A stretch of 23,744 nt of DNA from Paraphysomonas bandaiensis (taxonomy: Eukaryota; Protista; Chrysophyceae), in assembly GCA_965644295.1 (NCBI GenBank), contig CBFFRP010000299.1:1-23744 (forward strand), written 5' to 3'. The notes under the pieces were generated by a model that was not told the DNA's origin, ran no database searches, and saw only the letters and a list, made by a program, of their open reading frames with translations. Below are positions 1 to 20,722 of the stretch, piece by piece; the first letter of the stretch is position 1; every line of letters starts with the position of its first letter. The translations under genes were made by a program, and so were the position numbers.

Positions 1-51
1 ACCCTAACCCTAACCCTAACCCTAACCCTAACCCTAACCCTAACCCTAACC
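1..51. repeat. Telomeric repeat tract (CCCTAA)n / TTAGGG, chromosome left end
   Basis: Eight perfect CCCTAA units at 2-49, C-rich strand at the 5' end of the window, as expected for a left telomere. Confidence 0.97.
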
Positions 52-90
52 ACACCTCAAATGGGTAAGGAGCGATCGGGGGACAGCGTA

Positions 91-117
91 TAACCCTAAC
101 CCTAACCCTAACCCTAA
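91..117. repeat. Second, internal telomeric tract TAA(CCCTAA)4
   Basis: Four perfect CCCTAA units at 94-117, separated from the terminal tract by 39 non-telomeric nt. Confidence 0.95.
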
Positions 118-330
118 TCGAATAGTTTACGTTGGGGATATATATTATTACTTTTTGTTATTCATGATAATGTAATATAGAAGCCAATATAGCGCCAAAC
201 ATCGGTATACATAATATATATAGTGATACGAAACAACATCATCACAATACATGATATCCACATGATATTAGTTTTAACTAATATTTCAATAATTGAAACG
301 AAAATATTGGAATTACTTGTATTGTAGTAT

Positions 331-3300
331 CTACAATTCAGTGGTACGTGCACATTTTACAGTGACGGTTTCACTGTAAAATTTTAACAGCAGGCCCTTT
401 CCTTTAAAGGCAGCAATTCCGATTCTCCCGCAGACACCAGCAGCCACCAGCACAAGAGGGTAAACTAAACTGTCTTTAAAGCCCACTTCATCACCAGAAA
501 TATTAAACACCATCATTCCGTGGAAAAGCAATGATATAAATGCCACTACAAACACGCACTCCCTAGGTACACGCCACACGCCACTACAGCGCCTCTCCAG
601 TGAACGCCTATTCGTCGTGCACTGAGTAACAACAAAGCTATCTCCTGAGTTAAAAGCCAAAAGACATCGCCTATGTTGTACTTCTAGATATCTTGCTACC
701 ATAATGCGCCAAAACATTGATTTAGCGGAAATAGCAAACCCTACAAGTACCCCCAGAGGAGGATAGCACCTGCACATAGACATTAAACAAGGAGTAGGTT
801 CAATAATATATACAGAGTTTCATGATCCTAATTGACCTCGTATGCGTCACTTACAAGCCGAAAGTACATAGAACAGCAAGGTTGCTGAATAACACCGCGA
901 GTAGGTGTTCTGGCTTCAAGATATTACTGTTTGTGGGCCTCACTTCCAGCGGCCACACTACCCAGGGCATACGCTTTCTTACCCATACAGGTATGACAGC
1001 AGGGTCAACCTGAGACAGAAGGATATACATGATAGGCCCAACAATAGTAACGTATCCATAAGTATAGAGCAGCACGGGTACGAAGTTTTTAAGTACAGCA
1101 GCGCCGCACATGTAGTTGTATATGACAGGTGGGGCGTAGAGTGAAGAATATGACACAGTGGTGTATATCTCACACCGCAATGACACAAATGATATCCGCT
1201 GACAGTACGTAACATCATAAGATGAAGATATCTCCGATGTGCCAAAAAAGGCGTCGTACATGCACTCCTTGTCTGATACCAGGGTCGCCAGACAAGGAGC
1301 AACCACCGAGTTGAACACAGTTATCACGAGAAGAACCCTCGTCTTCTGAGTGCTAGTGTAGCTCCCTCCAAGATAGCTCATGGTGTGAATTAGACGCGGC
1401 ACCACAAGTTTACTGTAGGATATGCGGAAAAATGCCATGCAAACCTGAGCGAATAGCTGCTGGGTGCTCGACGAGTTGTCTAAGAAGATAATAACGTACA
1501 GTGAGTTCACTGCAATCACAACAGCTGCATTGAGGAGAATCGTCCCATACATTGAAAGATAAGAGACCACCACTGAATATAAGCCATCAACTTTTTCACT
1601 CCTCGAATGTATGTTCTCTGCAGCACTGCTATTGTTGGTATTCGAGGACGTTTTGGCTTGTTGTTTGAGAACAGTGTGTAGAAGTATAACTCTCACAGAA
1701 AGAAAGAAAGCTGCACACAATGCCAGACAAGTATAAAGTACCGCAGGTAATGTTCCTGTCAAAAATGATGAACTTGGAAACCAGGAGTATTGGTGCTGAT
1801 GAGTGCTGAACTGAGACCAACCCTGATCCCGACGTCCAAACAGTTTTAACGAGAGAAATAGACATAAGGAGACAGTACATATCCATAATACAAGAAGTGC
1901 AGCAATATTCTGGATGCCTTCAAGCACCTTCAGAAACATCCGCACCTCAGAATACTGCTGGTGATGTAATAGACTTTTCACATGCATAGGCGGTAACTCG
2001 CCGAGAGATGGGGCCGATGAAGGTGTTGTGGATGTAATACTAGCGGAGTTACTATCGTCTCTTAACCACACGGTTCCTCTGTTGATACTGATATCACTGC
2101 TGTCTCTAGTTTCAGTACAGATTGAGGATGCGGTTTTATGTATGCTCCCCCTCCGGTATATAGGATCGATAGGTTCAGCTCCCGACTTCACCCTTTCCCG
2201 GTATGTCAGTATCACATCACCACTCTCTTCTGGCTCAACAAGTAGCTTCAGCTGTGAAGCTAAGTAGCTCGTCCTTCTTATGCTGCTCGTACGTTGAGGC
2301 ACGGACGACTTCTCGGAACTATTCTCACAGCTTTCACCAAAAACTCGCATCTCCACCCCCTCCGTCTTCTCGTGGATAGGATTATTCGACATAACAGGAA
2401 TCTCTTCGGAAGCTGGTGATATGAAAACCTTGCTAAACAGTCTACTGAAGAGCGACTCGTTACTGGAATTATCACCAGCTCCATTCATGTTGTCATCATT
2501 GGACTCATTCCCCTGTACCACCATGCCTTCTTCCGCTTCAGTAAAATATTCATCGAATTCTCGCCCACTGCGAAATATCTCTTCTACCTCTAACCACAAC
2601 AACACATTTCCCACAAATACTCTCACATTCTGTCTCTCGTGCTTCCCGGCTCCCCAAGATACATAAACCCACCCGCCCACTGCGAGACACAAAGCACAAC
2701 CCAGCATCACACCAGAGGCCATGATAGCATCGTTCAATTGACTAGACGCACAAGCCACTTTGTTCGCTGAGGGATCGCGGGATGGTTTCGGGTGATTGCT
2801 ATCGCAGTTGAACAGATTTCCCTCTAGAACTTCTATTTTGGCTGCTCCATTATTATCATTGATGATTAGCATTGCATGGATATCACTTGCGATGAGAACA
2901 TACCTCTGGCATCTACTTTGTCCAAATGCAACGGCAGCATTCCGGAGAGCCTGTTCACATGCAGCTTTAAGCTGCTATTAATGTGAAAATCGTCCTCTTC
3001 CCATCCGCCGTTGAGCCTGTTGTATGATAGATCCAGGTCACTAAATCGGCTATTGCTGATGATTCCGGCTGGAATAGTTCCAGAAAGCCTGAAGTCATCA
3101 GCTCATCAGTTCGCGTTTTATATAGGAGATATATAGGATACCTATTGTGCGCCAACTCCAGTTCAGTAACAGGTGAGCCTGCTGATAGCGAGGGCGCCAG
3201 GCCCCCACTTAATCCATTGCCGCTCATTTGTACCACCCTCAGGGATGGCAAACGCTTTGTGTCGAACAAACAGGACGGCACACTTCCCTCCATGTAATCG

Positions 3301-5435
3301 AACAGCCGGATGCCCCACCAGTCGCCACTCTTACACCTGTAGGACATATTACATGAAATACCATTACATCTACACATTATTCTCCAGCTGTAGTCATATA
3401 TGCACAGCATATCCACCAGTACTACATGACACTCACTGCTTATTAGTATTTAGGCCGTTCAGAATAAGGGACTCGAGCGTACTCGCTGCACATATACTTT
3501 CCGGTATTCGGCCACGCAAGCAGTTATCGCTACCTACCACCGCTTCAAGTGCAAGACTGCTTGTAAACATCTCATGAGGTAACGGTCCCGTGAAAGTGTT
3601 CCTCGAGAAATCAAGAACCTGTAGCCTCGATGTATTTCTGTTGTTGAAGAGGGCGTGTAGTGTACCATGGAGGTTGTTGTTGTGCAAGAGCACTGTGGTG
3701 AGAGAGGTGAGGGATCCCAGAGAAGTGGGGAGGGTACCAGTAAAGTAGTTGTCGTTCAAGAGAAGCAGATTAAGACCATAGACATCACCATCACGGATAA
3801 CGAGAGATGTTCCCTACGCAACCGGGCTACGTCAGTATGGTAAAAGATAATGTTAGCACATCCCTTACCTCCCTGTCAGTCAGGAGCCCAATCGACTGTG
3901 GAATGGTTCCTGTGAAATGGTTACTAGCTAGGTCTATGGATATGAAAGAGTCATTCGCAGTAAATACGTCAGGGAAGGAGCCCGTCATCATGTTATTCGA
4001 CAGGGATAGCGCCTGAAGAAAGCGGTGCCCTAAAAGTGCTGGGGGAATAGTCCCTACACGCACGAAGTTATACCACCGAACATGCACAAAGTAAAGTATA
4101 AGATACCTGATACGAAGTTCGTAGAGGTGTCAAGCGCAGTTAGTAGGGGTAATTGTACAAGTGATGATGGAAGAGAACCGGAAATCAGGTTACCCCCAAT
4201 ATATAGGTCAGAGAGTTGAACACTGGAAAAGTCGGGCAAGGTGCAGCTCAGGTAATTGTCAGAAAGATAGAAGTTCACCAAGCGTGGTAGTGACACATAG
4301 GAGGAGGGGATGCACCCGGTGAGTCTGTTTGACACTGCACAACATAGTACACGTTACTGAAGGTGTTTAATATAGGCCACATATGAGTGCAAAAGTAAAC
4401 ACACTCATTGTAATGCACAAAAATACTGTGGTTAAAATATCTACTCGTATACACTTTTAATAGATATTCGTCATGGTTCTTACTGAGCACAAGAATCTGG
4501 AGGTTTATTAGATTTCCTATTTCCGGCGGGAGTGATCCTGACAGGCTATTACTGGAGCAGGATAGCGACGACAGGTTCTTCATGTCCCCCAGGGAAGAAG
4601 GAATGATCCCATGCAGTTGGTTAGAGTCGACCCTCAAAATCGTGATATTGGGAAGTGAAGTAGATATGTTACTTGGTATAGTGCCTGTGAACGCATTGCT
4701 ATCCAATGAGAGGCCGCGCAACAGGGGGTATACTCCTGTTGGTAGTTGCCCTGAGAACCTATTATCAGTAAGTATGAGTCGGGTGAGAGTTGAAGGGAAA
4801 TCAGGGAGGGTCCCTGATAAGTGATTGCCCCTCATATTTACGGTAACTGATACTGGTGGCAACGACAACAAACTGCCAGTGAGGTACAGCTCTCGTAGCC
4901 TCAGCTTTGTCAGGAGTAACATGCTGCTCATACATGTGGGAACGGAGCCAGAGTGCATCGTGAACGAAATATCAAGTGCACGAAGAGCAGACAACGAGCA
5001 CAAAGTGGACGGCAAGGTGCCAGTCATTGCCACACGATTTATTTCAAGTCCCTGTAGTCGTGTAAGTGACCCTACTGAGAAAGGCAATGTTCCATGAAGA
5101 TCCTCACTGAGAGATAAGAGAAAAGTTGTAAGAGAAGTGAGATTGCCTATCGCATCGGGTAGAGTGCCGTGCATATCTAAATCAAGTAAGGCCAAGCCGG
5201 AGATAGTGGATCTGTCTAGTTCACATTCCACACCATACCAGTTATCAACGCAAGGGTCAGAAGGGGAATCGAAGTTCCACGGGTTTCCATTACCAAAAAG
5301 AGGGTAATCCCATGTACTTCCGCCAGTGGAATCATATAATGACTTGAGTACGTTTCTATCTTCGACGGATACAGCCGCTCGGCAGTGATACACATATGCA
5401 AAACATAATGACCATACTAAATACAATGAACTCAT
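331..5435 (-). CDS. Cell-surface LRR receptor-like protein with multi-pass (~11 TM) C-terminal domain, ~1515 aa, 8 exons
   Basis: Exons (minus) 5435-4484, 4334-4107, 4053-3869, 3813-3437, 3336-3142, 3088-2904, 2841-855, 769-331 total 4548 nt, with all introns GT..AG. N-terminal signal peptide (MSSLYLVWSLCFAYVYHCRA), LRRNT cap (DRNVLKSLYDSTGG..W..W..DPC..WYGVEC), many plant-type 24-aa LRRs (LxxLxLxxNxLxGxIP), GNLFNC cap, one TM, a long Ser/Glu-rich loop, then about ten hydrophobic segments. Confidence 0.88.
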
Positions 5436-5840
5436 CCCACTCTGAAATACTGACTAATACTGACGCCTATATCTATCTTTCTATTCCCTCCACTTGCATC
5501 AAAAGACAACTTCCAGATCCATGATGAGGCTGATGCTAGTCGGCACAAGTCTATCTTGCAAATACACGCACACTTCTCCTCAAATGAGAATACAGCACAG
5601 TATACCTACTGGTATACTTTTTTGTTGAAGTCCTGGAGTGGAGTGCAGAGTGGTGACGAGATGGAATGAGAAGCCCAACGTCACGACATCCAGACACACA
5701 CAAGACGTACGGAGTGAAAACACCTGCAACTTCATCACAACAATCAACGGCGGCAGCTAACTCACAAGTGTGACCAATTCCCTGTCCTGGTTTTCTCTGT
5801 ACCTGCGGTAGAAGGTAACTTGAATTGTAATATTGTAACA

Positions 5841-7149
5841 ATGGGTAAGGGCGGTGAACGAGAAGTTGATCTCGATAAAAAATTGGAGGTCAGCATACGA
5901 TCAGTGCATTGAATTTGTTTATTGTTCACGCTCTTTCTTTCAGGTTCTTATTGATGGTCGTTACTATGACGTAACGAATTTGAAGCACCCTGGTGGATCA
6001 GTAATTAAGTTTTATGCTGGAAAGGGCATTGATGCATCTGAAGCTTTTGCAAACTTTCATGTACGGTCAAAAAAAGCCCAAAAGTACATGGCTGCGTTAC
6101 CCTCTAGAGAGGCTAACATGAAAGAAGAAAGGGCTAAACATCTTCCAGGCCAAGAGGCTTTGCTGAAAGACTTTGCCAAATTGACGAATGATCTCAAGGC
6201 GGAGGGTTTTTTTGACCCCAATCCTATGCATGCTTTGTACCGCGTTTTTGAAATCGTGGCCATGCATGCCATTGGCGCATACCTGTTACTCAATGGACAT
6301 TACTATGTGGGTGTCACAGTTCTCGGTATAGTGTCTGGTCGGTGTGGTTGGCTGATGCATGAGTGTGGTCACTATTCGTTAACTGGAAATATCCCACTCG
6401 ACAGGCAATTACAGGTGTGGCTCTACGGTGTCGGTTGCGGTATGAGCGCATCTTGGTGGAGGTCCCAGCATAATAAGCACCATTCCATGCCACAAAAAAT
6501 TTCCCATGATGTGGACCTGAACACTCTTCCATTGGTAGCATTTACTGACAAAGTGGTAAAGAAAGCAGGGAAAGCGATGAAGTCGTGGTTGTCATTGCAA
6601 GCCACTGCTTTCCCCCTCATCACCTGCCTGCTGGTAGCCCTGGGTTGGCAGCTATATTTACACCCAAGACATATCGTTCGTACCCGACAGGTCTCTGAAG
6701 GTCTTGCGTTACTTACGAGGGCTGGAATATTCTGGGGTCTTGTTGTTCCATATTTTGGCATCTGGGGTGGTGTCAAGCTTTATCTGCTATACAACTGGAT
6801 AGCCGCTGATTATATTTTCATTAACTTCGCAGTGAGTCATACTCATCTTCCAACGGTTCCGAAGGAAGACACTCAGGTAGATTGGGTCAGGTACGCCGCC
6901 GTTCATACGATGAATGTAGCTTCCGGACCGCTTGGGTGGGTGGACTGGTGGATGTCCTACCTCAACTTTCAGATAGAACATCACCTTTTCCCATCAATGC
7001 CACAGTACAGACACCCTATTATCAGTCCCAGAGTGAGAGCTCTGTTTGAAAAGCATGGTCTCGTCTATGACCAGCGCTCGTACACAGAGGCTATGATGGT
7101 CACATTTAAAAATCTCCACAAAGTGGGCTCTGACGTGTTCTACGGATAG
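5841..7149 (+). CDS. Front-end fatty-acid desaturase with cytochrome b5 fusion (Delta5/Delta6-like), 417 aa, 2 exons
   Basis: Exons 5841-5888 and 5944-7149 (55-nt GT..AG intron) give MGKGGEREVDLDKKLE|VLIDGRYYDVTNLKHPGG. HPGG heme motif and His boxes HECGH, HNKHH and QIEHH are present; Q in the third box marks the front-end class. Confidence 0.95.
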
Positions 7150-9674: not shown

Positions 9675-10289
9675 CTAAAGAGTGACTCCCATGCCGCGGG
9701 ATAACTCCTGGAGGGCAGTCAGTTGAATAAAGGCTTCGGCTTTCTCCTCAGGTACATTGGTGGACGCAAATGCCTTAGAAGCTGCCGCGAATTCTTTTTT
9801 CATAGCGTCCACATCAAAGTCATCAATAGGGAAAGCCTCTGGGCAGGCAACATCCTGCAAAGCAATTATTAGATATAACAACGCACAGAAAACAGCAAAA
9901 TCGGTACTACAATGCAAAAAGTATACAAAATCTTCACAGCAATACCGTGGTAGAGTCTTCGCGGGAAAAAGCAAACCCTCCGGAGACGAAAAACTTTTCC
10001 TGTTCCCCCTATGAAATAAATAACCGCTGAGAAAACACACAAAAATAAAATTACTTACACCAACGTGATATATTGTGACAGTACCCGCCTTAAGCTGCCC
10101 AATAACAGGGGTTTTGTTAGCTAATACGCCATAGTACCCGTCTTCACCGGGTAAGCTGATACCAGATACAACTTTATCCGTATAGATAGGGTTGTGGGGG
10201 GTGCCGAATGTCAAACGCAGTTCCGGAGCTCCCGCAGCAGCTGCTGTGGCAAAATTACGTCTTCCAATATTAAGGGCGGTGCGAATCAT
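9675..10289 (-). CDS. ATP16: Mitochondrial F1 ATP synthase subunit delta (bacterial epsilon homologue), 157 aa, 3 exons
   Basis: Exons 10289-10059, 10008-9946, 9854-9675 (introns 50 and 91 nt). Presequence MIRTALNIGRRNFATAAAA, then LRLTFGTPH..LPGEDGYYGVLAN.TPVIGQLKAG..EKFFVSGGFAF..EAFPIDDFD..EKAEAFIQL. Confidence 0.93.
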   Translation of the reverse strand: MIRTALNIGRRNFATAAAAGAPELRLTFGTPHNPIYTDKVVSGISLPGEDGYYGVLANKTPVIGQLKAGTVTIYHVGVSNFIFVCFLSGYLFHRGNRKSFSSPEGLLFPAKTLPRYCCEDFVYFLHCSTDFAVFCALLYLIIALQDVACPEAFPIDDFDVDAMKKEFAAASKAFASTNVPEEKAEAFIQLTALQELSRGMGVTL

Positions 10290-10682
10290 TATAGATATAA
10301 AAATACACTGGTCCAATGGCGTAAAGCAAGGTGATATTCTCGTCAACCAGCAAGCTCTTCTATCCACAGTTTGCGTCAATGTATTACGTATGTGTACAGC
10401 AGTGTGTACACAGTACAAAATAGCTAATAAAATTGGTGTGGGCTATTCTGGAATTTGTCGTTTTTGATGTAGAAAAACGAGTAAAATGCCGTAAAAACTG
10501 GAATTGGGTCTACCTGACAAGTCCGAGATAAAGGGAGAACTGAAAATAAATCACCTCCTGAAGATACGATTAACCACACTAAAATGGAAGTGTGTGATTT
10601 GTGCTGCAGCAATCTCTCCACTGAGCTCCTGATGCTTCACAGCTGCATGCCAACTATCGCCATACAGTCAGTACTAGCAACT
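10290..10682. promoter_or_regulatory. Putative bidirectional promoter shared by the ATP synthase delta and beta genes
   Basis: 393 bp between divergent ATGs. Contains TGTGTACA twice (10391-10398, 10403-10410), the second within the palindrome TGTGTACACA. Confidence 0.6.
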
Positions 10683-12377
<1,695 letters not shown>

Positions 12378-15173: not shown

Positions 15174-18100
15174 TTATCTGCTCCCACTTCTGCTACTTCT
15201 TTCCGCAATTGGTTCGGGAATACTGAGAGATCGACTCGTAGTGTTGTTCACTCTCGAACTGATCATGGTGTCTTCTGTGTAGTGATAGGTTGGCGAATTT
15301 GCTGCAAGCATCCATGTTGGCACTCCTGTTAACCTGAACACCCGTATGTGGTGATGAAGTTCACGCGCCTTGGCAATATGGCGCACGCCAAGCTGCTGCA
15401 ACTCTGTTGGTGTATCACAGTGGAGAAGTGTCAGCCCTGTGACCTCCATTCGCTCCATCTCCTCACAATAGATTCTCATGTGCAGAGATTTGAGCACACA
15501 CAACACATCATCTACCCCAAGGCTTTCCAGTTTAGTTACACCCTCACATGCGCCAGCAGGTGCAATATAAGGACCACTACTGTGCATTATACCCTCGTTT
15601 CCACTAGCTGCAGCTTTCACAGGCTCAATGATACGACTGAAGAGGCATGAGTGAACCTGCGATAGCATTGATAGCATTTCTGAGCCTGGTGGTGGGAAAG
15701 GAATTGCAGCAACAGGCTCCTCTTCTTCGGCAGCCTCCAGTCGTTCTTCCCCATCCGTAACAACAATAGGTTGATCATTAGTCGACGTCGTACCTACCCG
15801 TTTGCTACGCTCTCTGTCCCTTTGATCCTTGGTCCGACGCTTAGCCTCTTTGGCTTCCCTCTTTTGTCTGCGCCTAGCTGCTTGTTCAGCAGCTCGCCGT
15901 TCCTTCACAGTAAGTGTCTCTAGGTCCCTCTTCGCAGCTTCCAAAGAGCTCCTGGTTACAACCAATCGACTTTCCGGATCCTGTACTGCCAGAATATTCC
16001 CAATCGGCCCTAACCAACCCGCTTTCTCCCTTTGCTTCCGTCTCGCTTCCTTTTCTTCTTCCTCCCTCGCCCCATCATCCTCATCCATATCTCCGACGTT
16101 CTCTGTCGGGGGAGTGACATCAAGTGGTTGTCTACAAACTTCTTTCCATCCAGCGGCTACCTCCTCGTCGATGACAACCGGAATTACCCGAGTAACCGCC
16201 TTCCGTCTCCTTGCATAGGACCACTGCAGCACACACGTGTCCTCGCCAGCATTGTTTACCATATCAAGGTATCCCTTGGACACTACAGGGACAAACAAAG
16301 AAGAGTGATCTATACCGGCTAGCATCTGTTTGTTAATGCCGGTCTTCCTTTTTGTATCACACCACACCACCAGACCCCTCCCCTCGAGATACTCTTTGAT
16401 AGCTTCCACCACAGCGATATCACCCGTTGGTCCTCCGCAGCAGGTATGAGAGAGAAACACATCAAATCGCTCTGAAAGACCAACTGATATCGGTGTTATA
16501 CTGTCGATTGCGCTGCGTAATAAAGTCGCATGGGGGTTCGTTCCTCGCACCCCCTGCATACCACACCATTACTACCCGTATCATATCACACGAGCACATA
16601 CAGTACCTTGAAGAGTTGTCTAAAGACTTGGTCACTGACACTCATATTCGGCGCATGCATGCGCTCTGCAACTTCCTTTCCCACCCATACCTTTCTGGCT
16701 TCTGCCGTTTCTGCTTTTTGAAAATGTATAGCCTCTGCTTGTCGCACTGCATCCACCATACCACTCATATCAAATAGCCCTACCCAAGAGACAGTAGGAG
16801 CAAACTCTTGAGATATAATGGCTGTTGAGGGCGTGCGAGAAACTTTAGTTGCCACAAATGGACTGGAAGAATGATCAGATGCGTAAGCAGGATTCGAAAT
16901 ATCTTGAGGCGGGCAGCACTCTACCCCAAGCACCTCCAGAGTGTTCAGTAATATCTCCGAGACCCTTTTATTTATCCCAGGTAAAGTGCTCCTGTCGTCT
17001 CTAGGAACAAAGGGTAACGTACAGTGAGGCATGCCCTCCCATTGCCTGGTGGGCTTTTCTGGGGGAGTCAATGCCATTACTCTACTTCCATCCCCATATG
17101 CAAGCCATATAGTGTGGACCTCTACCAAATTTGATGGGATGTTGCATCCAAATAGAAGTATATCAGGAATGCAGAGCTCTAACTGTCTCTCCAAGTCGAT
17201 GAACTCATCTACTTCCTCTGGGTATGCCGCTGCTCTCAAGGCCGCCTGTCATAATCAGTAGTTTAATGAGACAATCTTAAAGCTATACATTCATCTGTAC
17301 CTGCTCAAGTCGCTCCAGCGATTGTGGTAAAATATTTCTGTAGTCTACCCACTCCTCGTCCTTGCGTCTTCTCTTTCGCTCACCTTCAATCAGAACCTGT
17401 TTTTTCTTCTTTTTCTTCAGCAGCTCGACTACTGGCAATACACCTACATCGAGGGGTAATGAATGACTCCCGCTATGTCGGGATGTGCCGCTCTCTCTAG
17501 CAGCATGCATCGCAAGCATTTCATCATGAATTAAGCGCGTTTTGTGGTCCCTATGTTTGTCGTCACCTTCTTCGTTATCTGTAGGAGCAAATAAAAATGC
17601 CAGGCCTCTCAATGGCACCGCCACATCTTCATTATCTCCCTCATAAAAGATATATGCATTGCTGTCCCTCTTCAGCTTGCGCTCTATGAGCTTCCTTGAA
17701 GCCAGCGGTTCACTATTATAAAAGACACGTATATCTTTAAACTCTAGTCCCTTGTACTGATCATTGCGCAGAGCCACTAGACTTCTAAGTGCCACAGATC
17801 GGGCTGCTGTTGTATCTCCCCCAGCGTAAATGTCGATACTGTTAATGGACGGCTGCGCCCGTACGATTGCATATGACTGGGATATTGTTCGCTCACTGGC
17901 GCGACAGAACGACTCCAACTGTAGAGCACACCCGTACTTCCAAGCTCCCCCAAGAGTGGCCAAAGCAGAAAGCCGCACCTGTACACAGAGTAAAACTATG
18001 TACCCAAAAGCCTAACAGTTATATCATGACAATTATTACTAAGGTGTACACCTGTAGCTTGGGAAGCATGGCGACTGGGAGGTATTCGAATTCAATCCTG

Positions 18101-20722
18101 ATGCTTGCCTGCACCCGGGTACTAACTGGGAAGAAGAGATCCCTTAGTTCTTGTTCGCTGGGCATATGTCCGCCTCCAAGCGGCTCTTCTGGAAGCATAG
18201 CTGGCACAATGCTTGCCTCAAGAGGTGTCCCATGGGAGTCATACAGGGGGTATGCTAACCTATAGTCATGAAACATCTGTAGAAATTGCGGCCTCAGAGA
18301 TGCATCATAGTCTTTCCATATCACATCGATCTCATCATGCCTCAGAAGTCCGAGCTTACCGTCTCCCATCTTATAGACCACTTCTGCCTTATAGGTAATC
18401 GCACATGCCATCACCTGTAGACGATTTCCATTTTGAGGAAAATATTCATGGAACTACATACACCAACCGTACCTGCGCTAGTTTCTGGGGCTCTAGAATG
18501 ATGTCGCCCTCTGGAAGAATGTGAACCGCTCCCCAATCGTGAAAGAGCTGTGTCGCTACCCCTACACCTTCCTCCTCCACACCGTGTACATCCACTGCAT
18601 ATCGCACCATCTCATTAGGAGTTAGCGAAAACCTTCCATGCTTTACAAGATCCCTAAGTCCAAGCTCGAGCTTTTTGTATGCCCTTGGAATACGTTGCAC
18701 AACATAAGGAAGATCTAGAGCAACTCTGACAAGGTCCCGCTTGAGCTCTTGTACTCCCAATCCGTTATGGCTATCTATGTGATGGTAACAGGCAATAGGA
18801 CCGAATCCCGCCTTTCGACCAAACCTCTGCTCGAATGAGTCTATCGTTCCGTCCGCCATTCTGCTAGTGTCCCTAGCATGAGTTGATACTAGTATGATGG
18901 GACTATCGGGGGCACAATTTCTGACCGTGTGAAAGTATACATACAGCATGGCCTCACTCTCGTGCTGCCTCGGGTTCCAGACAACCATAAATACAGTTCT
19001 GGAGCTGAAGAACAGTGAGTGGGTATTCATATAAACACCCTGTCCGGAAAAGTCCCATAAACTAAGACGCAAGTCATCAACCATCCAGTCACTCATACTG
19101 ACACCATCTGTCATGCCAAATCCCCCCTCAAACTTTCCTTCCATGAGCCTGTGTACAAGTGTCGTCTTTCCAGCTTCGCCTGGACCAACCAGTATTACCT
19201 TTACTCTCTTTACTGTTACCACCCCCCCATCATCATCCTTACTTCCAGGAGCGGCAGCAGCCATGAACATTTCCCGAATGTAAGAGAGCACTACTTGCAC
19301 ATCTTTGCCCTTCAGCTCAGGGGGAAGGTCTAACAAATTCACCAAGTCGAGGTCCAATACTTTGAGGCGGGTAAGCTTGCGAAGGATCTCATAGCCTGTA
19401 CCAAGATGAGGAGTGGAATGTAGACAACGCCACAAGCTACAATATGAGCACGAGTATGAGTTACTCAAGTACCTGCGAGCCTGTTACCTCCCAGGTAGAG
19501 ATGGTCAATAAGTTTGCAGCAGGCTAGTCCCTCGGCAATCATCCCTGACCAGAAGACAGTTAGATTGCCCGACCAGTGTGAACAAAGGGTTCATAGGTAC
19601 AATGTAAACTGCACTTGATGGGATAAAGCTCACCTGATATGTTGTTCCCACTGAGATTGAGTCTTCTAAGGTTTACGCATTTACTGATACCCTCAGGGAA
19701 AAATCCCGACAGCTCGTTGTTAGCGATGCTAAGTTGCCTAAGATTCACACACTTCTCAATGGAATTCGGTAGTGGGCCTACCACAGATATAAGTATTGCA
19801 GCACTATATCAGCACCACACAAAACCATCCCCACGCCCAGCAATGTGCATCTATGGCGTACCATTTATTTGGTTGTCGTCAAGTAGCAACTTCTGCAAGT
19901 TCTTCCACTTTTCTACACACTCCGGCAGCTGCCCCGACAAACGGTTGTCGGATAGACTCAATGTTGTAAGATTACTGCATCTGCCGAGAGTTTCTGGTAT
20001 ACGGCCTGCCATAGTATGCTGATCATGCTACAGCTATATCGAACCGCAACAAAGACATACCGGTAAGTTTGTTATGGCCCATCGATACTTCTCGCAGGTT
20101 TGGGCACCTTCCAAGACTCTCAGGAATGTGATCTGCATAATATTAGAAATTACTACGTTTGATGAAGCCATATCTTTACCCATCAATCTATTGTTCGACA
20201 GCCCAATATACTCTAAGCAGGAGCAGCGACCAAGAGTGTCTGGAATACTTCCTGTCTTATAATTATCAGAATACAGGCATGTGTCGCACAGCCTGTCCAC
20301 CTGTGAGCAAATTGCGTGATAGACCAAGGTCTTTAAGGCTTGTCATACGCCCTATACTCTCCGGTAGCGGTCCTGAAGCACGTATAACTTAGACACTATA
20401 TATGCACGATGTACAAACGCACCAGTGAGCTTATTGCCTCGGAGGTTGAGTCTCTTCAGGCTCGAGCATAAGGTGACGACCTCAGGAAAGCTCCCCTCAA
20501 GGTTATTATTCTCTAAATTAAGCTCCACTAATAATTCCTGCTCATTCACAGTCACCCCAAACCATGAGTTCAAGGGGGCATTGGAGTTCCAGTTATCATC
20601 CCTGATCCTAAAAAGAACACGTATGTGCTTAACAACTGCACCACAGAGGAATCTCAATACAAATACCATTCAGGCCCGTTGAGACCAGTGTATATCTCCA
20701 GCAATATTTGTCTGGTATTCAT
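15174..20722 (-). CDS. Roco protein LRR-Roc-COR-(linker)-TIR-SAM, ~1599 aa, 13 exons
   Basis: Exons 20722-20667, 20607-20423, 20372-20301, 20251-20180, 20132-20061, 20005-19862, 19777-19634, 19544-19473, 19395-18473, 18414-18052, 17978-17301, 17245-16607, 16553-15174 total 4800 nt, all GT..AG. Roc motifs KVILVGPGEAGKTT, WDFSGQ, THSLFFSSRTVFMVVW, STHA. COR motifs IPRAY..LFHDWGAV..IILEPQKLAQVMACAI, IVPAMLP. TIR FDVFLSH..VWCD..GIDHS. C-terminal SAM. The start codon is the least certain part. Confidence 0.88.

Follow-up and report, generated by a model that had tools for sequence, protein, structure and literature searches.

The contig CBFFRP010000299.1 of the chrysophyte Paraphysomonas bandaiensis (assembly GCA_965644295.1), analyzed over its full length of 23,744 nucleotides and referred to below as the window, carries near one end a minus-strand gene (331..5435) whose predicted product joins a plant-type leucine-rich repeat (LRR) ectodomain to a membrane domain with the fold of the TMEM16, OSCA/TMEM63 and TMC proteins (the TCS superfamily). 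This architecture and fold, taken alone, are close to certain. The protein is proposed to function as an ectodomain-controlled, OSCA/TMEM63-like cation-permeable channel, an interpretation that the analysis slightly favors. As defined by reading of the sequence, splice sites and transcripts, the LRR-TCS gene begins with an ATG at 5435 and ends with a TAG at 333-331. Its eight exons (5435-4484, 4334-4107, 4053-3869, 3813-3437, 3336-3142, 3088-2904, 2841-855 and 769-331, the last including the TAG) contain 4548 nt of coding sequence, with 1515 codons specifying 1515 amino acids, and are separated by seven GT..AG introns of 149, 53, 55, 100, 53, 62 and 85 nt.

Public transcript contigs were aligned to positions 300-5500 of the window, where the joints of the gene read as CT..AC on the plus strand. 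The contigs come from four runs, designated X1, X4, X5 and X6, of which two are data sets from cultures and two are metatranscriptomes of marine poly(A)/cDNA, and together they show transcript joints for 7/7 introns. A single 4231-nt contig spans introns 1-6, and other contigs span intron 7 (770-854, GTAAGT..CAG), the joint of which (767/853, cut +2) is present in contigs of all four runs. Because all seven introns appear as transcript joints in the cultures and in the marine metatranscriptomes, the gene is a genuine, intact one that is transcribed under cultivation as well as in the sea. With exon 7 as the query, a word-indexed protein search also retrieved the 100% identical peptide P0001 from transcriptome MMETSP1103 (taxon 36769, Paraphysomonas, a chrysophyte), which holds the same junctions as those derived for introns 1-6. 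An in-frame 3-nt deletion at position 1599, in the variable loop between the second and third transmembrane helices (TM2 and TM3) of the membrane domain, is common to contigs of culture X1 and metatranscriptome X5, and at 14 single-base sites between 637 and 2614 the X1/X5 contigs differ from the window. The deletion and the substitutions look like strain or allele differences rather than editing.

Telomere-type hexamer repeats, read directly from the sequence, occupy positions 2-49 and 94-117 (within 2..117), ~215 bp from the LRR-TCS stop codon. The gene is therefore subtelomeric, the last before the chromosome end, a position that fits a fast-evolving receptor family.

The encoded chain starts with a predicted signal peptide of ~21 residues (5373..5435), recognized by direct reading of the sequence as a hydrophobic core followed by Ala-Ala; homologues P0003 and P0006 likewise begin with a hydrophobic leader. 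The LRR ectodomain (2729..5372) is encoded by exons 1-6 together with the beginning of exon 7, and comprises an LRRNT_2-type cap and ~25 plant-type 24-residue repeats as assessed by Pfam, relatives in the Protein Data Bank (PDB) and a motif count. Exons 1-6 match only LRR_1, LRR_8, LRR_14, LRR_4 and the LRRNT_2 cap in Pfam, and P0001 contains 15 strict LRR motif matches, with more repeats in exon 1. The nearest solved structures are the ectodomains of the plant LRR receptor kinases and receptor-like proteins GSO1 (5e-92), FLS2 (1e-88), PEPR1, MIK2 and TDR, within a range of 5e-92 to 1e-76. Judged by its sequence, the ectodomain is that of a plant-type LRR receptor, with an LRRNT cap and tandem 24-residue LxxLxLxxNxLxGxIP repeats. 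The resemblance to the plant LRR receptors extends to the plant-specific repeat type and the LRRNT_2 cap. In contrast to those receptors, the LRR-TCS protein has neither a kinase nor a short cytoplasmic tail, and its output module is the predicted 11-TM TCS-fold domain. Pfam detects no kinase family in any exon, and an LRR receptor kinase identity was rejected on this ground; a kinase-free protein was also what the preliminary description of the locus had claimed.

Just outside the first transmembrane helix, TM0, lies a juxtamembrane cap recognized by family conservation, (I/V)LxGNxFxC ... DP ... xC(G/A)S (2741..2839). The cap is kept in 105 of the 121 family representatives with an adequate N-terminus, and 104 of these 105 also possess a strongly hydrophobic TM0. 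By hydropathy, TM0 of the window protein comprises residues 746-768 (2660..2728). It is followed by a linker of 233 residues (1961..2659), assigned by composition, that is rich in Ser (15.5%) and Glu (11.2%), has a net charge of -12, contains no Pfam domain and is probably disordered. The distance between TM0 and the membrane domain is hypervariable in the family, ranging from 13 to 287 residues with a median of 63. The topology deduced from the sequence places the signal peptide and LRR outside, TM0 running inward, the linker in the cytosol and TM1 running from inside to outside; as this topology follows from the signal peptide, the loop between TM5 and TM6 is predicted to be extracellular, and the Cys-rich character of this loop is a second ground for the assignment. 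TM0 would carry the chain from the outside to the cytosol, like TM0 of OSCA/TMEM63, and an outside N-terminus, TM0 and ten further helices match the 11-TM topology of those proteins, as the preliminary description had anticipated. The succession it had listed, of signal peptide, LRR ectodomain, TM0, Ser/Glu-rich loop and ten helices, was recovered in full by sequence reading, Pfam, hydropathy, composition and models.

The ten helices after the linker are seen in confident models. Two AlphaFold models were obtained, each with a 91-sequence alignment and without templates. Model (a) covers the entire domain of a same-genome paralog (L002:1444-2955, 504 residues in one open frame), which is 27% identical to the window domain, and has a pLDDT of 89.5 and a pTM of 0.88. 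Model (b) represents the window's own exon-7 part, 368 residues covering TM1-TM7, with a pLDDT of 89.4 and a pTM of 0.83. When model (a) was compared with 48,161 PDB representatives by a structural alignment independent of Foldseek, the top 13 matches were all TCS proteins (TMEM63, OSCA, TMEM16, TMC and Ist2), with Z values of 24.2-14.2 over 315-390 aligned residues. TMEM63A ranks first (Z 24.2, 385 aligned residues, rmsd 4.6), followed by OSCA1.2 (Z 21.8), afTMEM16 (Z 21.1), OSCA2.3 (Z 20.6), TMEM16F (Z 20.1), OSCA3.1 (Z 19.4), TMC-2 and TMC-1 (Z 18.5 each), TMEM16A (Z 18.3), TMEM63B and TMEM16K (Z 17.2 each) and two entries of Ist2 (Z 16.6 and 14.2). The next chain, an unrelated helical hairpin, scores Z 9.4. 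For model (b), ranks 1-11 in VIA-align are occupied by the same families (Z 14.9-9.3), among them TMEM63A (Z 14.9, 304 aligned residues), afTMEM16 (13.6), TMC-2 (13.6), TMC-1 (13.5) and OSCA1.2 (13.2). The top 50 Foldseek matches in the PDB are likewise all TMEM16/OSCA/TMEM63 proteins, mostly TMEM16, with weak E-values (best 1.5e-3; TM-score 0.38-0.47). Protein-language-model features provided an independent, weaker lead, in which the closest named families were clusters of anoctamins (0.86, 180/256 features).

The models place the predicted membrane domain in the TCS superfamily at the level of the fold. A TMEM16/OSCA/TMC-type fold had been proposed in the preliminary description, with a 7-TM GPCR, another fold or no similarity as the outcomes that would contradict it, and the structure comparisons bear the proposal out. 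A GPCR or other polytopic fold was rejected, since none competes among the matches of Foldseek and of the comparison with the 48,161 PDB representatives. The structural evidence consists of predictions, with the complete-domain model derived from the 27%-identical paralog and the window model confined to the exon-7 part, so that an artefact might be suspected, either a gene model that merges two genes or a familiar fold imposed by AlphaFold. Against the former stand the 4231-nt contig and the contigs across intron 7, and the homologues in other organisms that show the same layout in one open frame. Against the latter stand the omission of templates, the pLDDT values reached with the 91-sequence alignment and a separation of 15 Z units from unrelated folds. 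Such an error is very improbable and has already been largely refuted.

The membrane domain is divided between the last two exons. Its first part, from a pre-TM1 helix to TM7 (855..1960), was delineated on model (b) (AlphaFold model m8dc47476cd6c), and exon 7 matches positions 14-394 of the family profile (E 1e-98). The model places TM1 at 1838-1951, TM2 at 1634-1753, TM3 at 1481-1585, TM4 at 1367-1468, TM5 at 1274-1354, TM6 at 1010-1108 and TM7 at 860-913, all on the minus strand. Family profile positions 387-508 are found in exon 8 (E 6e-20), and exon 8 therefore completes the membrane domain with TM8, a cytosolic loop, TM9 and TM10 (334..769). The exon 8 product can be aligned to the C-terminal ends of P0005, P0006 and P0007. 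Intron 7 splits the TM7-TM8 hairpin motif LLTFG/LxxPxL at the position of the slash; the third of the segments quoted in the preliminary description spans this intron (854-770) and had been joined correctly.

Conserved polar residues are found within TM3-TM7, namely two Asn in TM3, the F-(K/R/D)-x-x-W-N motif in the middle of TM4, FN..AP in TM5, a Ser in TM6 and TFG...P at the TM7-TM8 turn. The TM5 motif FN(S)xxAP (1295..1315) is the most conserved stretch of the family (N 96-98%, P 92%). Between TM5 and TM6, the models predict an extracellular β-hairpin (1136..1231; model strands 244-256 and 263-275) of two strands with 13-15 residues each. Four near-invariant Cys residues surround this hairpin (codons within 1256-1273, 1199-1210, 1169-1180 and 1097-1117) and are conserved at 94-100% in the 91 sequences. 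The TM2-TM3 loop is short and variable, with ~30 residues in the window protein. A near-invariant FDxxGD-type motif is located at 487-507, with its two Asp residues conserved at 97% and 93%. At a threshold of ≥70% in the family alignment, no acidic residue is conserved in TM6-TM8, and the only acidic positions that reach this threshold are two Asp near the TM9-TM10 turn. A TMEM16-type Ca2+ site is thus absent, and Ca2+-activated gating of the TMEM16 type was rejected for the same reason. TMEM16, OSCA and TMC proteins are homodimers and TMEM63 is a monomer; a two-copy complex prediction returned a score of 0.00 and the verdict 'no answer', which counts neither toward nor against a dimer.

The mid-TM4 motif (1415..1438) carries an Arg in the window protein, and the corresponding position is charged in 76/91 sequences (K 51, R 5, D 20), with the adjoining Trp and Asn conserved at 89% and 62%. 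This charge bears on the alternative that phospholipid scrambling, rather than ion conduction, is the main activity of the membrane domain, in which case LRR engagement would open a membrane-exposed hydrophilic TM4-TM6 groove and cause local lipid scrambling, for example for exposure of an engulfment signal or for membrane remodeling at the contact site in phagocytosis. Most TMEM16 proteins are scramblases, TM4/TM6 form the gate of TCS proteins, which charged TM4 residues open, and replacement of a single residue by Lys along the TM4/TM6 interface opens TMEM16F, TMEM16A, OSCA1.2 and TMEM63A to ions and lipids, such replacements in TM4 making scramblases of TMEM16A, OSCA1.2 and TMEM63A (PMC11534332). 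In the LRR-TCS family a charge is naturally present at mid-TM4 beside the conserved Trp and Asn, and afTMEM16 and TMEM16F score near OSCA/TMEM63 in the structure comparison. However, the groove-facing orientation of the TM4 charge is putative, the residues of the Ca2+ site are missing, and it is to OSCA/TMEM63, mechanosensitive cation channels that act as channels in the wild type, that both the best structural matches and the TM0 topology point. A mainly lipid-scrambling function is regarded as unlikely.

The gene is one of a large family. When a profile built from five membrane domains was searched against 1.84 billion representatives of 50% identity clusters, at least 2885 clusters scored E≤1e-3, and 1008 of them reached E≤1e-30. 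A word search yielded seven homologues with the same layout, including the full-length proteins P0006 (1511 residues) and P0007 (1623 residues, Ochromonas danica), and homologue P0005 contains the entire membrane domain in one open frame. Family members sampled with Pfam contain LRR domains only, and in the best 149 representatives, at least five LRR motifs occur in every protein (88 of 88) whose N-terminal part ahead of the domain measures 400 residues or more. Fusion to an LRR appears from these sequences to be obligatory in the family. Sampled members bear the names 'hypothetical protein' or 'LRR protein', and those with a named source are chrysophytes (Paraphysomonas and Ochromonas/Chlorochromonas danica). 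The ESM-Atlas shape search and the 'unnamed' feature search gave nothing informative beyond one short diatom-labelled cluster, which matches residues 141-332, and a third word-indexed search of proteins, started from the 91-sequence alignment, gave only 2 matches, which carry no taxonomy. Full-text literature searches, incomplete in their coverage, did not turn up any account of a fusion between an LRR and a TCS-fold domain. A further member, P0032, is a 1939-residue protein in a single uninterrupted frame (L011; GCA_013573075.1, JACCEA012375264.1, 2001-7820), flanked by a nucleoside-diphosphate kinase gene.

Within the 62.6 Mb Paraphysomonas genome, paralogs are found at ~15 loci. Three of them stand in tandem on contig C371 (~178-180, 197-199 and 207-209 kb; two on the plus and one on the minus strand), each with its membrane domain divided among two or more exons. 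The ~15 paralogs, the tandem cluster and the subtelomeric copy together constitute receptor-like family dynamics. On contig C17, an LRR-TCS paralog lies ~5 kb from a canonical anoctamin locus (PF04547, 4e-75), at 98087-99728 and 104941-106311. This is the only place where both kinds were observed side by side, and the neighborhood is probably a coincidence.

Other genes of the window lie beyond the LRR-TCS gene. A 431-residue plus-strand frame at 5854-7146 encodes a fusion of cytochrome b5 and fatty-acid desaturase domains (Pfam Cyt-b5 5e-7, FA_desaturase 5e-33); its predicted product is a front-end-type desaturase, and the gene is divergent to the LRR-TCS gene. An ATP-synt_DE_N domain is found by Pfam on the minus strand at 9678-10418. 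ATP-synt_ab_N, ATP-synt_ab and ATP-synt_VA_C domains extend over two adjacent plus-strand frames at 10955-12374, which are probably one spliced ATP-synthase-type gene. Finally, neighboring minus-strand frames at 15177-19468 contain TIR_2 (6e-10) and Roc/Ras (6e-19) domains.

Canonical OSCA genes (at least seven loci) and anoctamin genes (at least ten loci) are present elsewhere in the genome, and the LRR-TCS family therefore stands beside them as a further branch of its own. No match to the OSCA/TMEM63 domains RSN1_7TM, RSN1_TM and PHM7_cyt was obtained at E≤10 for 10 family members. There was no match to Pfam Anoctamin at E≤10 either, in addition to the missing TM6-TM8 Ca2+-site residues, and a whole-Pfam scan gave no TMC match at E≤10. 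The LRR-TCS family is a new family of a known superfamily, undetectable as such by sequence, with a new domain combination.

Comparison with the individual TCS families places the protein closest to OSCA/TMEM63, which provide the best structural matches, have 11 TM helices, with the N-terminus outside the cell and TM0 preceding the 10-TM core, and likewise lack a Ca2+ site in TM6-8. The two differ in several respects. OSCA has the cytosolic domain PHM7_cyt between TM2 and TM3, where the LRR-TCS protein has its ~30-residue loop, and few residues before TM0, where the LRR-TCS protein has an LRR ectodomain of ~745 residues. The long, putatively disulfide-bearing TM5-TM6 β-hairpin belongs to the LRR-TCS protein, and sequence homology between it and OSCA/TMEM63 is not detectable. 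TMEM16/anoctamin proteins, including nhTMEM16/afTMEM16 and Ist2, share the 10-TM fold; unlike them, the LRR-TCS protein has no Ca2+ site, does not match Pfam Anoctamin and lacks the ferredoxin-like domain of a cytosolic N-terminus, and its own N-terminus is predicted to lie outside by virtue of TM0. TMC-1 and TMC-2 also have the same fold and are conceptually similar in being TCS pores with input from an extracellular apparatus. In TMC, however, the extracellular link consists of separate subunits, whereas in the LRR-TCS protein it is part of the same chain, which has no Pfam TMC match. To our knowledge, the characterized TMEM16, OSCA/TMEM63 and TMC proteins are gated from inside (Ca2+), by the membrane or by accessory tethers, and none has an extracellular recognition domain of its own; nor do we know of a characterized LRR surface receptor that signals through its own ion pathway instead of kinases, partners or adaptors.

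The divergence from all characterized TCS families, the loss of the Ca2+ site as well as of the cytosolic domain known from OSCA, and the long, variable cytosolic linker are consistent with another alternative, that the TCS-fold domain has lost its transport activity and serves an LRR with an adhesion or recognition role as polytopic anchor or scaffold, any signaling proceeding via linker-bound partners. The presence among the structural matches of Ist2, a yeast membrane tether with a TMEM16-homology domain, points in the same direction. Yet the 10-helix core is strongly conserved over at least 2885 clusters, the polar residues of TM3-TM7 are near-invariant and the extracellular hairpin is conserved. 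Such constraint exceeds the need of a mere anchor, for which a single TM helix suffices in plant receptor-like proteins. A domain devoid of transport is given a low probability.

In the preferred interpretation, that of an ectodomain-controlled channel, the membrane domain would serve as the conduction unit, with a pathway lined by TM3-TM7 as in characterized TCS proteins. The LRR would be engaged either by a ligand that resembles a peptide or protein or mechanically, through a pull on a surface to which it is bound (prey, scales or matrix). The signal would then reach the gate, the likely routes being TM0 and the rigid four-Cys TM5-TM6 β-hairpin, which leads directly from TM5 into TM6, the helix responsible for gating in TMEM16 and OSCA. 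Opening of the gate would create a cation-permeable pore and translate recognition at the surface into a flux of ions with no kinase involved, and the variable Ser-rich linker would be a likely site of cytosolic regulation. The points that count in favor of the channel are the intact, expressed gene, the TCS fold of the models and the language-model lead to anoctamins, the TM4/TM6 gate that charged TM4 residues open in TCS proteins, the polar and charged residues of TM3-TM7, the conserved juxtamembrane cap with TM0, the conserved Cys residues on the outside, the apparently obligatory LRR fusion, an ectodomain like that of plant peptide receptors and the receptor-like family dynamics.

Several points weigh against a channel of this kind. 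Some TCS-fold proteins, such as Ist2, may be non-conducting, and the fold alone does not separate ion from lipid permeation. As TM0 is peripheral in OSCA, coupling via TM0 in the LRR-TCS protein is speculative. At the sequence level, the membrane domain has no Pfam match at E≤10 in window exons 7-8 and 10 family members, and profile searches of PDB chains with the 5- and 91-sequence alignments gave 0 matches at E≤10. An hhalign comparison of the family with four canonical OSCA genes of the same genome yielded a probability of 0.2% and an E-value of 0.29; the sole stretch aligned is the TM7-TM8 hairpin ('LLTFG...P.LA' in the family vs 'MTY..I.P.LL' in OSCA), and the alignment is not significant. 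The preliminary description had drawn parallels between segments of this protein and TM4-TM8 of the superfamily. The segments are real and correspond to the end of TM4 with TM5, to TM6 and to the TM7-TM8 hairpin, whereas the likeness of their motifs is without statistical support in the hhalign result, even though the one stretch that hhalign aligned is the TM7-TM8 motif among these parallels.

A broader proposal can be put forward more tentatively. LRR-TCS proteins may constitute a widespread protist class of single-chain 'pattern-recognition channels', with the window protein as its founding member, in which the LRR would directly gate the TCS-fold pore, by ligand or by tether force, via TM0 and a disulfide-braced TM5-TM6 hairpin. 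The family would then represent a fourth, receptor-coupled TCS branch and a new ligand-gated channel/scramblase architecture. This is a possibility to be considered, although on balance a doubtful one.

At present, architecture and fold are established, and we infer transport activity and gating by the ectodomain. One chain may both recognize a target outside the cell and pass ions or lipids over the membrane. The hosts are phagotrophic and photosynthetic stramenopiles, in which the sensing of prey, pathogens and mates is poorly understood. If the proposal is true, they possess a kinase-free path from surface recognition to ion or lipid flux that is hard-wired in a large, conserved family. The family would also be a deeply diverged TCS branch, useful for finding what the fold essentially needs, and the question of whether a TCS pore can be ligand-gated from outside becomes directly testable.

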